From Perkinsela sp. CCAP 1560/9 (lineage: Eukaryota > Protista > Euglenozoa: Kinetoplastea): a DNA stretch of 64,000 nt. A model generated the notes under the pieces. The model was not told where the DNA came from. It saw only the letters and a program-made list of their open reading frames with translations, and did no database searches. The DNA lies in NCBI GenBank assembly GCA_965644495.1, contig CBFFSA010000005.1:682001-746000 (forward strand), in the 5' to 3' direction. Position numbers and translations under genes: made by a program. This document shows, piece by piece, positions 46,006 to 49,244 of the stretch; the stretch's first letter is position 1; every line of letters starts with the position of its first letter.

Positions 46006-46319
46006 GGACGGAAGAGAGAGAGAGAAAAAGTAGAAAGTAGGTCGAGGAGGAGAGAGAGAGAGAAATGTGAGGGCGTGTAGGGTAGGGGGTGTGTTTTTTG
46101 TTGGTGATGGTGGGGTAGGGAACAGGAGTATTTTTGTAATCCCGGGGAGTTTGGGAATAATCAATGGGTCCCCCCTTTATGTAAGATATGCCGTCGAAGC
46201 GACGGTGTTCAACATGTAAGAAAGCAACATGTCCAAATCATAGACACGGAAAAAATATCCTTGGCGTTACATTCTCGATGCACAAAGGAGATCTTTTCAG
46301 AATAGTGCCAGTACCACCT

Positions 46320-47204
46320 TCAGTTAAGAGATTTTTCGTACGCATTTTGTGTCATGCGGGGTACAGAGCGTTCAATCCAAAACTTGGGAACTGGTTTTGG
46401 GTAAACAACGGCCGTGAAATTGTTGTCCAGTAAAGTTAGCGAAATGCCCTTTACCCCCTTTTTTATGCTGCAGAGGTTCACGACTCCTCCGAAGCGACAG
46501 TTTCCTAAGTTTAGAATTTTCAGATTCGAAGGAAGATTGTGAAACTCAATGGTTCCATTGAAAGCATTCTTGGATAGCTTGAGCTGCTCTAAAGAGTCGG
46601 GCAAGCACGTCAAATCAACGCCCCCCGAAAGCAAGTTTCTGGTAAGGTCCAAATCTTCAAGACGTGGCAGCTGGGTCAAGTCAGCGGCACCTTCAAAGGA
46701 ATTGTACGAAAGATTTAAAACACGCAGTGTTATGGGGAGCAATGTGAGATCCATGGGCCCGCTCAAATCATTCCCATCGAGTTGGAGTTTTTCCGTTTGT
46801 GTCGGTAGCGTCGTGACGTCAAAACGTCCGGTGTGCTTGTGAGCGCTCAAACGCAAATCCAGAAGAGCGTTGCATAAATTCGAAGAGAGCAACTCACCTC
46901 TGAGATAATGTGTAGTGTGTCGCACAACGATAACTCGCTGTAGAAATCTCGGCATGTAGGGCCACGTGAGATTTCCTTTCATGTGAAATCGAAAGCCAGC
47001 GAAATGGATCGCTCGCTCCTGGGCGTCGCAAACTATTCCTATCCAGGAACATGCCGGGACGGAAGAATTCCTCCAGTCTGAGGGTAAGTTGGTGATGTGT
47101 TGAACAAACCGTCGCATGACCTCATCGTCCGGGATGGTCAGCGCACTTACTTTGTCTCCGTATTTGACACGCTTGAAAGGGGGTTCCACGGAGCTGTCAG
47201 GCAT
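46320..47204 (-). CDS. Leucine-rich repeat protein
   Basis: N-cap CSWIGIVC; repeats DLTxLPxxLxxLxLxxNxxxG. Confidence 0.85.
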   Translation of the reverse strand: MPDSSVEPPFKRVKYGDKVSALTIPDDEVMRRFVQHITNLPSDWRNSSVPACSWIGIVCDAQERAIHFAGFRFHMKGNLTWPYMPRFLQRVIVVRHTTHYLRGELLSSNLCNALLDLRLSAHKHTGRFDVTTLPTQTEKLQLDGNDLSGPMDLTLLPITLRVLNLSYNSFEGAADLTQLPRLEDLDLTRNLLSGGVDLTCLPDSLEQLKLSKNAFNGTIEFHNLPSNLKILNLGNCRFGGVVNLCSIKKGVKGISLTLLDNNFTAVVYPKPVPKFWIERSVPRMTQNAYEKSLN

Positions 47205-47356
47205 TATGAACAGATGAAAAAGTTTAACGATGCGTAGAATTTACTAGACTGAGTTTGAAAAAACATTTTGAGCTAGAGTGATTCGCACGATGGCATACAT
47301 CCTTGTATCGCGTATGACGTAGAAATTTACTCTTCATTTCGAAACTGATCAAACCG

Positions 47357-48716
47357 TTACCCTAACTGATAGTTTAACTTTGAAAGATGCAGTGTTTTAA
47401 CCGCTTCCTGTGAGAGTGGGTTTTGGTACAACACCACCATAGTCCGGCCCACCCCCTCCTGCACTACGACCTCTGAGAACAAATTCACATCCAACCGAAG
47501 CGTAAGAAGGGAGGCTGGAAAATTCCCCAACACAACCTCTCCTTTCAAGCTGTTCTCCCGAAACATTGATGTTCATGTTTTTTTTTTGATGTTCATGCGC
47601 TCGTTGGCGCAGAGATACAGCCCTTGATGCGACAGCCGATATCATCGGCACAATCCGTATTGACGGATGTCGCACCAAGGGGGTTTAGCTCGGACTCTGT
47701 CGGTAGAGGGGGTCCAGGCAACTCGCCCTCTCTTTACGCAGCCGGAGGGGCGCACTGCAACCGACTCGGTCCCAGTCGGTAGAGGTGGTCCAGGCAACTC
47801 ACCACCTCTTTACGCAGCCGGAGCGGCGCACTGCAACCGACCGCTGCCTCACGATAAGACGAGGCAGAGCCACGCCCAGTGGTCCTCAAGGGAGGCCACC
47901 ATGGCGCATGGCTCCCCGGGAAGGAAAGGGCGCGAAGGGAAGAAACCCGGGGAGGGAAGAAAACCCACTCAAGGAGTGAGCCGGGGAGGGGTGATGGGGT
48001 GGAAGCGCGTCCCCTACTTCGCCGAGAAAGAGGGACAGTTTCGGCCTTAGTGCCGGCCGGCAACGGGCATATAAAACAGTAAGATTATGCCCGTTGCCGG
48101 GGAAAGAAAAGATGAACTAAAGGGAAAATGTACCAACAAGGTACAGAAACTGTATCTTTATCGACAACATGGTCAACCCCACCGGGAGCTGCGTAAGATC
48201 CAGCACACTTCCAAAAAACCGATTCTGATCCGCTCGCATACTTAACAACCCTGCCGGGAGCTGTGTGAGATCCGGCTGCCCGGTCATCTCATTTCTACTC
48301 AAATCCAGCGTCCGCAGGGCCACCGGGAGGTTCGTAAAATCCTGCCCCCCCTGTAGGCCCTGGTCGTCCACGTAGAGCGACCGCACGGTGGCGGGGGCCT
48401 GCGCGAGTCGCATCCCGCCCTGGAGGCGTCGGGGGGGGGAGGCGCTGTGGAAGTAGCTCCCCCAGTTGATCCCCTCGACCCGAGCCGCCCCGTCGCACCG
48501 CACCCCCGCCCAGGTACACGGGGAGACGGGGCGGGTCGCGCCCCACCGGTGGTTCCGGCGCGCGGTGACCCAGGAGGGGTGGGGGAAGGCGAGGGCGGCG
48601 ACGAGGGACGCCATGGTGCTCTCGACGGGGAGAAGCGCCCGGGAGACTTTACCGGTGCGCGTGGAGGGGGGAGGGGGAGGAGAGGGGGGGAGGTCGGCGG
48701 TGCGGGAAAAGAGCAT
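47357..48716 (-). pseudogene. LRR gene interrupted by a ~600-bp non-coding insertion
   Basis: 5' part (CTWAGVRC, LRRs) ends ...LTMLSI at ~48160. The frame resumes at ~47561 as RENSLKGEVVLGNFPASLLTLRLDVN, completing the LRR. Confidence 0.8.
47562..48159 (-). mobile_element. Spliced-leader-headed structured retroposon-like insertion
   Basis: Starts AAAGATACAGTTTCTGTACCTTGTTG|GTAC; has many hairpins and a duplicated ~67-nt module; ends CATGAACATC(A)10CATGAACATCAATG. Confidence 0.7.
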
Positions 48717-49244
48717 GGGGGGTTGGGGAAAAAGGGGGAGGGAGGATAGGGGTAGGGTGAGGAGAGGAGAGGAGAAAAAATGGCCTTCAAAGGGTTGGAA
48801 GGAGGGGAGGGAAACGTTTTGTGGTGTTTTGTTTTTGAGAAAAAAAAGTCGAAAGGAAGGATTCAAAATAAATTTGGTAAAATGCGAGTAAGCGGGCGAA
48901 TGAAGACAAGTCAGGTAGTAGGGGGTAAGGGTGTAAAGCGGAGTGTAAAGCAAGCAGAACAAATTGATCGGGTTTTAACGAAACAGCTAAAAACCAGGTG
49001 AAGCGCAACTTTAAGAGATCTACACACCCGCGGCTTACACTTCTATACTATGATGCTACGTAAGATAATCTCTAGAAAGAAAATCAGGGCTCTAATCTGC
49101 AGTTACCCAGTGTGATCCTGTGTGTGCTGTGCCACCCAGTGCAACCTGTGCTACCCAATATTACCCATATAAACTTTTAAAATACACATTCTGATACGAA
49201 GTACAGAAAACTGTATTATTATGACAGCTATCATTGCATAAACG

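Follow-up and report, generated by a model that had tools for sequence, protein, structure and literature searches.

The stretch of DNA analysed here, hereafter the window, comprises 64,000 nucleotides (nt) of Perkinsela sp. CCAP 1560/9 (contig CBFFSA010000005.1 of assembly GCA_965644495.1, positions 682,001 to 746,000). It contains two adjoining genes for leucine-rich repeat (LRR) proteins, one of which is interrupted by a 598-nt insertion headed by a piece of the spliced leader (SL). The insertion is a copy of a multi-copy, non-coding, structured retroposon resembling a short interspersed nuclear element (SINE). The adjoining LRR gene, at 46323-47204, matches LRR_4, LRR_8 and LRRNT_2 in Pfam. 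The interrupted gene, whose two halves were searched separately, is its paralogue (E = 9e-13) and shares with it an LP..L..L.L..N.F.G repeat of ~24 residues; the upstream part has a weak match to LRRNT_2. Read along the minus strand, the LRR frame passes from ...LTQLPVGLTMLS into the head of the insertion, ATAAAGATACAGTTTCTGTACCTTGTTG, which is followed by GTACATTTT. The frame (...DLTQLPVGLTMLS) is broken by ATAAAGATACAGTTTCTGTACCTTGTTG and GTACATTTTCCC, running 15 codons (45 nt) into the insertion before it meets a stop codon in this haplotype, and reopens about 600 nt further on as FRENSLKGEVVLGNFP...; the other haplotype is intact. Just before the frame reopens, the insertion ends in ...GCGCATGAACATCAA, ten As and CATGAACATCAATG, that is, in ...GCG followed by CATGAACATCAA, A10, a second CATGAACATCAA and TG.

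47564-48161, minus strand: the whole insertion, an SL-headed SINE copy of 598 nt, delimited by the junction 47563-48162 in the contig of an empty allele and by genome-wide copies
48162-48962, minus strand: upstream part of the interrupted LRR gene, whose frame enters the insertion and stops at 48117
47357-47563, minus strand: downstream part of the interrupted LRR gene (FRENSLKGEVVLGNFP...), placed by its reading frame and by the contig of run X1

The insertion is polymorphic

We compared contigs of four public sequencing runs with positions 46300-49000 of the window. The single public run that may be of RNA contains no sequence of this locus. One of these runs, X1, carries the same species label and comes from a different sample. 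A contig of 4,441 letters from this run covers 46300-47563 and resumes at 48162, so that the 598 nt in between are absent, with one ambiguous base. The empty site reads ...ATGTTGTCG joined to TTTCGGGAG (MLS, FRE), and the protein restored across it is LTMLS followed by FRENSLKG. Comparison with this site reveals neither a duplication nor a deletion of target bases at the window insertion, or at most a duplication of 0-1 bp. The absent segment starts with ATAAAG and ends with CAATG; it thus has AT..TG ends and not the GT..AG or AT..AC ends of an intron. The flanks of the contig, moreover, differ from the window at eight single bases. Because these differences mark another haplotype, and because of the AT..TG ends of the absent segment, we take the empty form to be a DNA allele and not a spliced RNA. 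The window insertion is a recent, polymorphic copy of its family, with 100% identity to the query of the genome search and 99% to its nearest relatives.

An earlier, sequence-only reading of the window had proposed that an element is inserted in an LRR gene, and the X1 contig, which lacks exactly 47564-48161, bears this out. The sequence features which that reading listed were all found in the window, and its statement that the insert has no credible open reading frame (ORF) holds, the internal ORFs of 109 and 127 amino acids (aa) matching no Pfam family. Other details had to be revised. The limits it gave, 47562-48159, are shifted by two bases by the empty site, which also replaces the junction it had reconstructed (LSI, RENS). 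The repeated CATGAACATCAA, which it took for a flanking repeat of the kind left by target duplication, lies with both copies inside the inserted segment, and is the 3' tail of the element in duplicate.

A structured, non-coding SINE

A genome-wide search with the element gave 49 scored matches out of 343 first-look candidates, at 76-100% identity. The element is ~578 nt long and is present in roughly 70-100 assembled copies, which are 86-100% identical at full length; it is therefore not the single-copy insert that the sequence-only reading had allowed for. The copies share their ends: (AT)AAAGATACAG... on the 5' side, and on the 3' side ...GCGCATGAACATCAA with 0-8 As (CATCAA, then As). Exact patterns for the junction between head and body occur 92 times in the assembly, and those for a tail of the window subfamily type 67 times. 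The parts of the window copy are as follows.

48134-48161, minus strand: the 5' head, ATAAAGATACAGTTTCTGTACCTTGTTG, identical in 28/28 positions to nt 11-38 of the SL exon (locus L078)
48128-48133, minus strand: GTACAT directly after the head, of which GTA equals the SL splice donor; no further similarity to the SL intron
48057-48100, minus strand: a long 5' hairpin (CCGGCAACGGGCAT...ATGCCCGTTGCCGG), with a compensatory change from C-G to A-U between subfamilies
47689-47841, minus strand: two tandem units of 77 nt, 90% identical, from a self-BLAST (321-397 against 397-473)
47586-47682, minus strand: the 3' module, a long-range stem around two hairpins, with ATCTCTG, a GCGC hairpin and CATGAACATCAA, corresponding to the end of the 3' untranslated region (UTR) of a long interspersed nuclear element (LINE) described below
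47564-47585, minus strand: the remainder of the A-run (47578-47585), the second tail copy CATGAACATCAA and TG, wholly part of the insertion and containing no target bases, from the window sequence and the X1 contig

The first two As of the A-run (47586-47587) close the preceding 3' module. The predicted RNA fold has an energy of -258 kcal/mol, compared with -201.5 +/- 6.6 for shuffled sequences (z = -8.55). Among 11 copies from several SINE subfamilies, 28 of the 118 consensus pairs show compensatory changes; in the 5' hairpin, for example, alignment pair 66:102 is CG in six copies and AU in five. A scan against Rfam with E values up to 10 returned chance matches only, and no ribozyme, tRNA, 7SL or snRNA. 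The element thus lacks the head of a classical SINE (tRNA, 7SL or 5S, with an internal promoter for RNA polymerase III): no Rfam family reaches its threshold, and the head is SL exon.

Two short complementarities link the head to the rest of the element. The motif GAAACTGT (48035-48045, minus strand) is kept in the body of every SINE subfamily and is the exact complement of the SL core ACAGTTTC, and GTATCT in the 3' module (47613-47620, minus strand), present in all subfamilies except the outlier L055, pairs with AGATAC in the head. Both pairings are invariant and so are beyond a test by covariation; they could make the head fold back onto the body, or they could pair with the SL RNA of the cell. 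A copy of the SINE was also seen in run X5, which carries the label of a different organism (organism B): a contig aligning to 47584-48157 is 95-99% identical to the window, has other flanks and, through a skip of 76 nt, contains only one of the two 77-nt units.

The head is a piece of the organism's own spliced leader

The SL core ACAGTTTCTGTAC occurs 508 times in the 21-Mb genome, compared with 0-1 times for a reversed control. Two tandem SL gene units of 297 bp lie at C1:661 kb (within locus L078, C1:659-664 kb) and are built like genuine SL RNA genes, each with the exon AACTTTAACGATAAAGATACAGTTTCTGTACCTTGTTG followed by the intron GTATGAGAAGCTTCGAAC.... The exon is 38 nt long, and the head of the element matches its nt 11-38 without a difference. 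The sequence-only reading, which had recognised an SL match over roughly nt 12-39 plus the donor, was therefore correct apart from the numbering. The resemblance to the SL gene ends abruptly after the donor: following GTA the SL gene reads TGAGAAG and the element CATTTTC, and an SL-gene contig aligned to the window departs right after GTA (loose end at 48131). Across the junction of head and donor a hairpin of 6 bp is possible between TGTACC in the head and GGTACA, made up of the last G of the head and GTACA.

The point at which the head starts, between exon nt 10 and 11, lies 8 nt before ACAGTTTCTGTAC. This equals the distance to ACAGTTTCTGTAC of the canonical 11/12 site, at which CZAR and SLACS split the mini-exon (PMC5814959). 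The start of the head is homologous to the split site of CRE, SLACS and CZAR in the SL exon. Of 62 distinct SL heads, counted over both the LINEs and SINEs and the poly(A)-type SL-headed sequences described below, 43 read ATAAAGAT over nt 11-18, and the others that lack nt 1-10 start within 2-3 nt of it, some with an extra C. At some 5' junctions (L003, L015, L075 and L076) there are short, reiterated partial heads, which fit repeated copying up to a true RNA end near nt 11.

Some remnants beside full copies have a related appearance. In the 5' flank of the SINE at L008, ATAAAGATACAGT and ACATCAATA stand together and look as though a head had been fused to a tail and the body lost, and at L031 there are three partial heads in tandem. 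Such remnants may derive from insertions that aborted or collapsed. Separately, contigs of runs X1 and X4 cover the SL part of the window at several times the depth of the SINE body, and only two SL units are assembled; the assembly probably lacks the SL array or has it in collapsed form.

An autonomous LINE shares both ends of the SINE

A search of the genome for reverse transcriptase (RT) gave 150 scored matches above the Pfam cut-off, from 1,072 first-look candidates. RT genes are very dense for a genome of 21 Mb, and many lie in open frames of 1,000-2,800 aa. We read five LINEs in full (L073-L077). They are ~4.7-5.1 kb long, apart from L075, which is shortened to about 3.5 kb, and in each a single ORF of 1,158-1,637 aa begins ~39 nt 3' of an SL head. 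The head ATAAAGATACAGTTTCTGTACCTTGTTG is found on L073 and L075-L077, and on L074 in a form shortened at its 5' side.

The LINE ORF matches RVT_1 (E = 6e-33), and the best match of its protein among solved structures is R2 (E = 1.5e-30). A second, weak stretch of this alignment falls in the endonuclease region of R2 (conditional E 1e-4, not significant alone), and contains the motifs CPIC-x8-H-x4-C (C-x2-C-x8-H-x4-C), RHN and RPD, with E 13 residues further on (x13-E). This is near the restriction-like endonuclease pattern published for SLACS and CRE, in which the spacing from C to RHN is 9-10 residues compared with 11 here (PMC12857005). An apurinic/apyrimidinic (AP) endonuclease domain was not detected in the LINEs. 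The single ORF of the LINE thus codes for an RT and, at the C-terminal end, for a restriction-like endonuclease (CCHC, RHN, RPD...E) of the type that the R2/CRE group has. A protein homology search with the LINE returned no named CRE, SLACS or CZAR relative, its nearest database relatives being unnamed.

The LINE bodies do not align to each other as DNA, and in a BLAST comparison of the SINE with the five full LINEs the head alone matches. The 3' ends nevertheless share a common structure. All LINE 3' UTRs and all SINE subfamilies end in ATCTCT(G/A), a hairpin, (C/T)ATGA and a short A-rich tail, which extends 7-20 nt after YATGA and is not poly(A). Among 16 aligned LINE and SINE tails the stem of this hairpin occurs as CGC/GCG, CAC/GTG, CAG/CTG, TAG/CTA and GTGAT/ATCAC, and four of its pairs are changed on both sides. 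Shared ends together with a 3' hairpin conserved in structure are as expected for the non-autonomous partner of a stringent LINE. On this evidence the SINE is very probably mobilised in trans by the LINE family that has the same head and tail. The sequence-only reading had suggested a non-autonomous partner of CRE and a comparison with LINE termini; a LINE with a restriction-like endonuclease, of the group that includes CRE, indeed shares with the insert both the 28-nt head and the covarying 3' module.

Insertion at one codon boundary of LRR genes

Sixteen of 42 distinct tails stand directly before an open [L]xxNx[L/F]xG frame, compared with 142 of 20,000 random window positions (0.7%), and these 16 include three SINE subfamilies as well as LINE L077. 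The LRR units downstream of tails are in sense orientation in 14 cases and in antisense in none. In subfamily SINE-A the codon for Leu-6 starts 7-10 nt after YATGA, i.e. directly 3' of the tail. Judged from the empty allele and from other sites as reconstructed, the break falls between codons 5 and 6 of LxxLx/LxxNxLxG, and a stack of LINE and SINE in L073 and the LINE L077 occupy the same LRR register. The specificity for LRR genes is a strong preference and not an absolute one.

The SL gene, read in frame around nt 10/11, gives LLTLT and IKIQFLY and resembles an LRR unit. We considered whether mimicry of the SL by the LRR target could be the basis of targeting, and rejected it: units with an insertion resemble the SL no more than 119 units without one do, either upstream of the break (3.2 vs 3.3 of 10 positions, p = 0.67) or downstream of it (7.75 vs 7.66 of 28, p = 0.36).

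Probable mobilisation by the LINE, and alternative explanations

What we observe directly, namely the insertion and its copies, the modules shared with the LINE, the type of endonuclease, the target register and the lack of a target duplication, is best explained, with a probability of about 0.8, by a structured SINE that is mobilised by the LINE family, combines a head of SL nt 11-38 with the 3' module of the LINE, and has the boundary between codons 5 and 6 of LRR units as its target. In the mechanism that we propose, the LINE protein would bind the 3' module and, in the sense orientation, nick the LxxLxLxxNxLxG repeat of LRR-coding DNA at the boundary of its codons 5 and 6. The RNA would then be reverse-transcribed from the LRR nick, and the cDNA would be joined without gain or loss of target bases. 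The RNA's 5' end would lie near nt 11, and the head may serve as a 5' recognition module or may be the leftover of an SL target.

Several observations weigh against this explanation. About 60% of the copies lie outside recognisable LRR frames; their surroundings are microsatellites, other elements or unrecognised sequence. Mobilisation in trans is deduced from the shared ends. No library type is recorded for run X1, and the status of the empty form as a DNA allele is read from its flanks and from the ends of the absent segment. Four copies have (A)ACG ahead of the head, which hints at RNAs reaching further upstream. Finally, this explanation does not account for the start of the head at nt 11, the poly(A)-type retro-elements and SL RNA retrocopies of the same genome reaching SL nt 3. 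Since RT in this cell can reach nt 3, the nt-11 boundary is specific to the LINE/SINE family.

The insert could instead be a plain retrocopy that generic LINE machinery made from a trans-spliced RNA. This genome does produce such copies, both as units headed by SL nt 3-38 that follow poly(A) runs and as retrocopies of whole SL RNA. Yet the present element exists in roughly 70-100 copies rather than one, its 5' end is fixed at nt 11 and not at nt 3, it lacks a poly(A) tail, and it has a LINE-type structured 3' module and a fixed register in LRR genes; copy number and shared 3' module already contradict a simple retrocopy, which we consider scarcely credible. Another option is an intron-like or introner element that is removed from LRR mRNAs and leaves its host genes functional, as could be expected from insertions that are all in sense and between codons, from a GT 28 nt inside the element, and from young copies in which both flanks are still open frames. 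However, the segment absent from X1 starts with AT and ends with TG, there is no AG at or near the 3' end, and a stop codon follows 45 nt into the insert. The eight flank differences moreover identify the empty form as another allele and not a spliced product, and the oldest copies (92-93% identity) are mostly outside recognisable LRR frames, which fits disruptive insertions and not tolerated introns. Removal as an intron is thus highly improbable.

The origin of the head has to be considered separately. The element may descend from the downstream half of an SL RNA gene that was split at the CRE site, with the body and the LINE-type tail gained later. The sequence-only reading favoured an SL-gene origin, and part of its case stands: the head starts at the homologue of the 11/12 site of CRE, SLACS and CZAR, at the same 8-nt distance from ACAGTTTCTGTAC (PMC5814959), GTA follows the exon as it does in the gene, and the 6-bp hairpin over exon and intron is kept and even tightened (GGTATG to GGTACA). 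Other observations weaken that case. Only three bases of the intron match, and in local alignments of ten copies to the SL intron the body scores z between -1.1 and 0 in nine; the tenth, L055, reaches 2.9, with 4 of 300 shuffles as high. The LINE heads stop precisely at the end of the SL exon, without GTA. Of eight SL-like loci in the assembly (two intact genes, five SL RNA retrocopies and one chance match) none has a LINE or SINE in it or beside it, although the SL array may be under-assembled. The proposal that the element escaped from the SL array finds no support in these loci, LRR genes being the family's own target. Overall, descent from an SL gene appears unlikely. Alternatively, the head may have been taken from the SL pool, either through a trans-spliced precursor or through masters in SL genes that duplicate nt 11-38 and have the LRR copies as their offspring. 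The heads are identical to the present SL in 28/28 positions even in LINE families whose bodies are beyond DNA alignment, including the lineage-specific ATAAAGAT and CTTGTTG, an identity that favours either re-acquisition from the SL or strong selection. The start codon of the LINE is ~39 nt past the head, like that of an ordinary trans-spliced mRNA, and all known CRE elements duplicate their target downstream of the first nick (PMC3636483). Against this, genomic copies have no AG acceptor ahead of the body, and double heads, expected from re-splicing at the AGs inside the head, occur neither in 84 loci nor in the window. The heads also lack nt 1-10, whereas other retro-elements of the same genome retain nt 3-10, and no master copy was seen in an SL gene. 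We regard acquisition from the SL pool as a real, though minority, possibility. The candidate sources of the head are a processed or internally initiated RNA, masters in unassembled SL genes (SL nt 11-38 then being the target duplication) and trans-splicing.

A bolder version of the LINE-mobilised SINE, which we regard as speculative and improbable, holds that a CRE-like LINE lineage specific for SL genes switched to a protein-coding repeat and retained part of its former target, the downstream half (SL nt 11-38), to function as a 5' RNA module. If so, each insertion would plant the end of the SL exon and a GT donor, in sense, in an LRR gene. Truncated LRR transcripts could then serve as leader donors in trans-splicing, and a LINE landing in an SL gene could rebuild a capped SL-mRNA.

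Relation to known retroelements

The partner LINE resembles the CRE clade (CRE1, CRE2, SLACS and CZAR) in its kinetoplastid host, in its single ORF and in its combination of RT and C-terminal restriction-like endonuclease, with a close motif pattern in which one spacing is off by a residue. Both are also tied to the SL exon at a homologous nucleotide (canonical 11/12, here 10/11). CRE elements, however, reside inside SL genes, have a poly(A) end and make target duplications (PMC12278014, PMC3636483). The present element instead carries SL nt 11-38 as its own 5' end to non-SL loci, its target being LRR genes, and has a structured tail module with a short A-run; the window copy lacks a duplication. 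The LINE/SINE family thus fails three defining features of CRE: residence in SL genes, a poly(A) tail and target duplication. It further differs in having a non-autonomous partner at all, given that a survey of the trypanosomatid mobilome lists neither a non-autonomous CRE partner nor an LRR-targeted element (PMC12278014). Literature searches on the SL sequence and on retroposons with an SL head turned up no paper that describes an element of this kind. To our knowledge, the only short non-autonomous partners known in kinetoplastids are those of the ingi clade.

In R2 short internally deleted elements and in stem-loop LINE/SINE pairs, the short partner keeps only the 5' and 3' RNA modules, and the 3' hairpin is conserved in structure and not in sequence. 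The present SINE is like them both in the modules that it retains and in its 3' hairpin. R2 itself and the LINE have in common the restriction-like endonuclease, a strict target preference and blunt or near-blunt insertion. They differ in that the target here is a protein-coding repeat and not ribosomal DNA, and in that the 5' module consists of host SL sequence and not of a ribozyme, no Rfam ribozyme having matched. The family functions like an R2-type LINE/SINE pair, and its link with CRE consists of the endonuclease type and the SL nucleotide at which the head starts.

There is a further likeness to ingi/RIME in RHS genes and TcTREZO in MASP genes, retroelements of trypanosomes that strike one relative position in a large surface or repeat gene family time after time, with interrupted pseudogenes as the result. 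Ingi uses an AP-type endonuclease, and TcTREZO consists of composite repeats (PMC5814959). These elements have a Pr77 head or none and, unlike the present family, no SL piece. In dinoflagellate retrogenes, relict SLs are evidence for the reverse transcription of SL-bearing RNA. The genomic copies described here likewise start with the SL, as do the nt-3 retrocopies of this genome; they differ in having one nt-11 head, no stacked leaders, no poly(A) and a dedicated LINE partner.

Site-specific LINEs with restriction-like endonucleases are known from ribosomal DNA, SL genes, telomeres and microsatellites. The new feature of the present one is a LINE/SINE family that has a piece of the host SL as its 5' end and targets, in a single orientation, one codon boundary within a protein repeat. 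The family has been active recently enough for insertion polymorphism. It offers a tractable case for studying how such endonucleases gain targets, what the 5' RNA module does in R2-like elements, and how retroelements affect a large LRR gene family. Should the donor that it carries be in use, the family would in addition be a mobile supply of donors for trans-splicing.

Other SL-headed sequences in the genome

The genome holds two classes of SL-headed retro-sequences: the LINEs and SINEs, which start from nt 11, and poly(A)-linked units and SL RNA retrocopies, which start from nt 3-4 (CTTTAACG...). Five loci of the second class are retrocopies of whole unspliced SL RNA (L079-L082 and L084, at C2:801 kb, C20:11 kb, C25:24 kb, C49:34 kb and C86:12 kb). 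They run from SL nt 3-4 (CTTTAACG) through the intron to ...GGGGCTTA and an A-run, and have no SL promoter region upstream. The arrays of units at L041-L054 (C1:1.44-1.61 Mb), in which SL nt 3-38 directly follow the poly(A) of the preceding unit, make up, besides the LINEs and SINEs, a second class of retro-elements with an SL head, of poly(A) type. Some of these units have stacked partial leaders (AACTTTAACGATAAGATACAT, then CTTTAACGATAAAG...), and their ORFs start with MGGHPPQIH..., with MPTSVEEQN... or with the Cys-rich MNDPRSGGKLWCCHCG....

Two candidates were dropped. Apparent junctions of tail and intron at C12:26096 and C86:12055 proved to be one chance match and one SL RNA retrocopy, and a tRNA-like stretch in the SL repeat was not recognised as a tRNA by ARAGORN. 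Within the window, the upstream spacer of the interrupted LRR gene has a degenerate SL relic, ATAATACAGTTTTCTGTACTTCG, at 49185-49215 on the minus strand.

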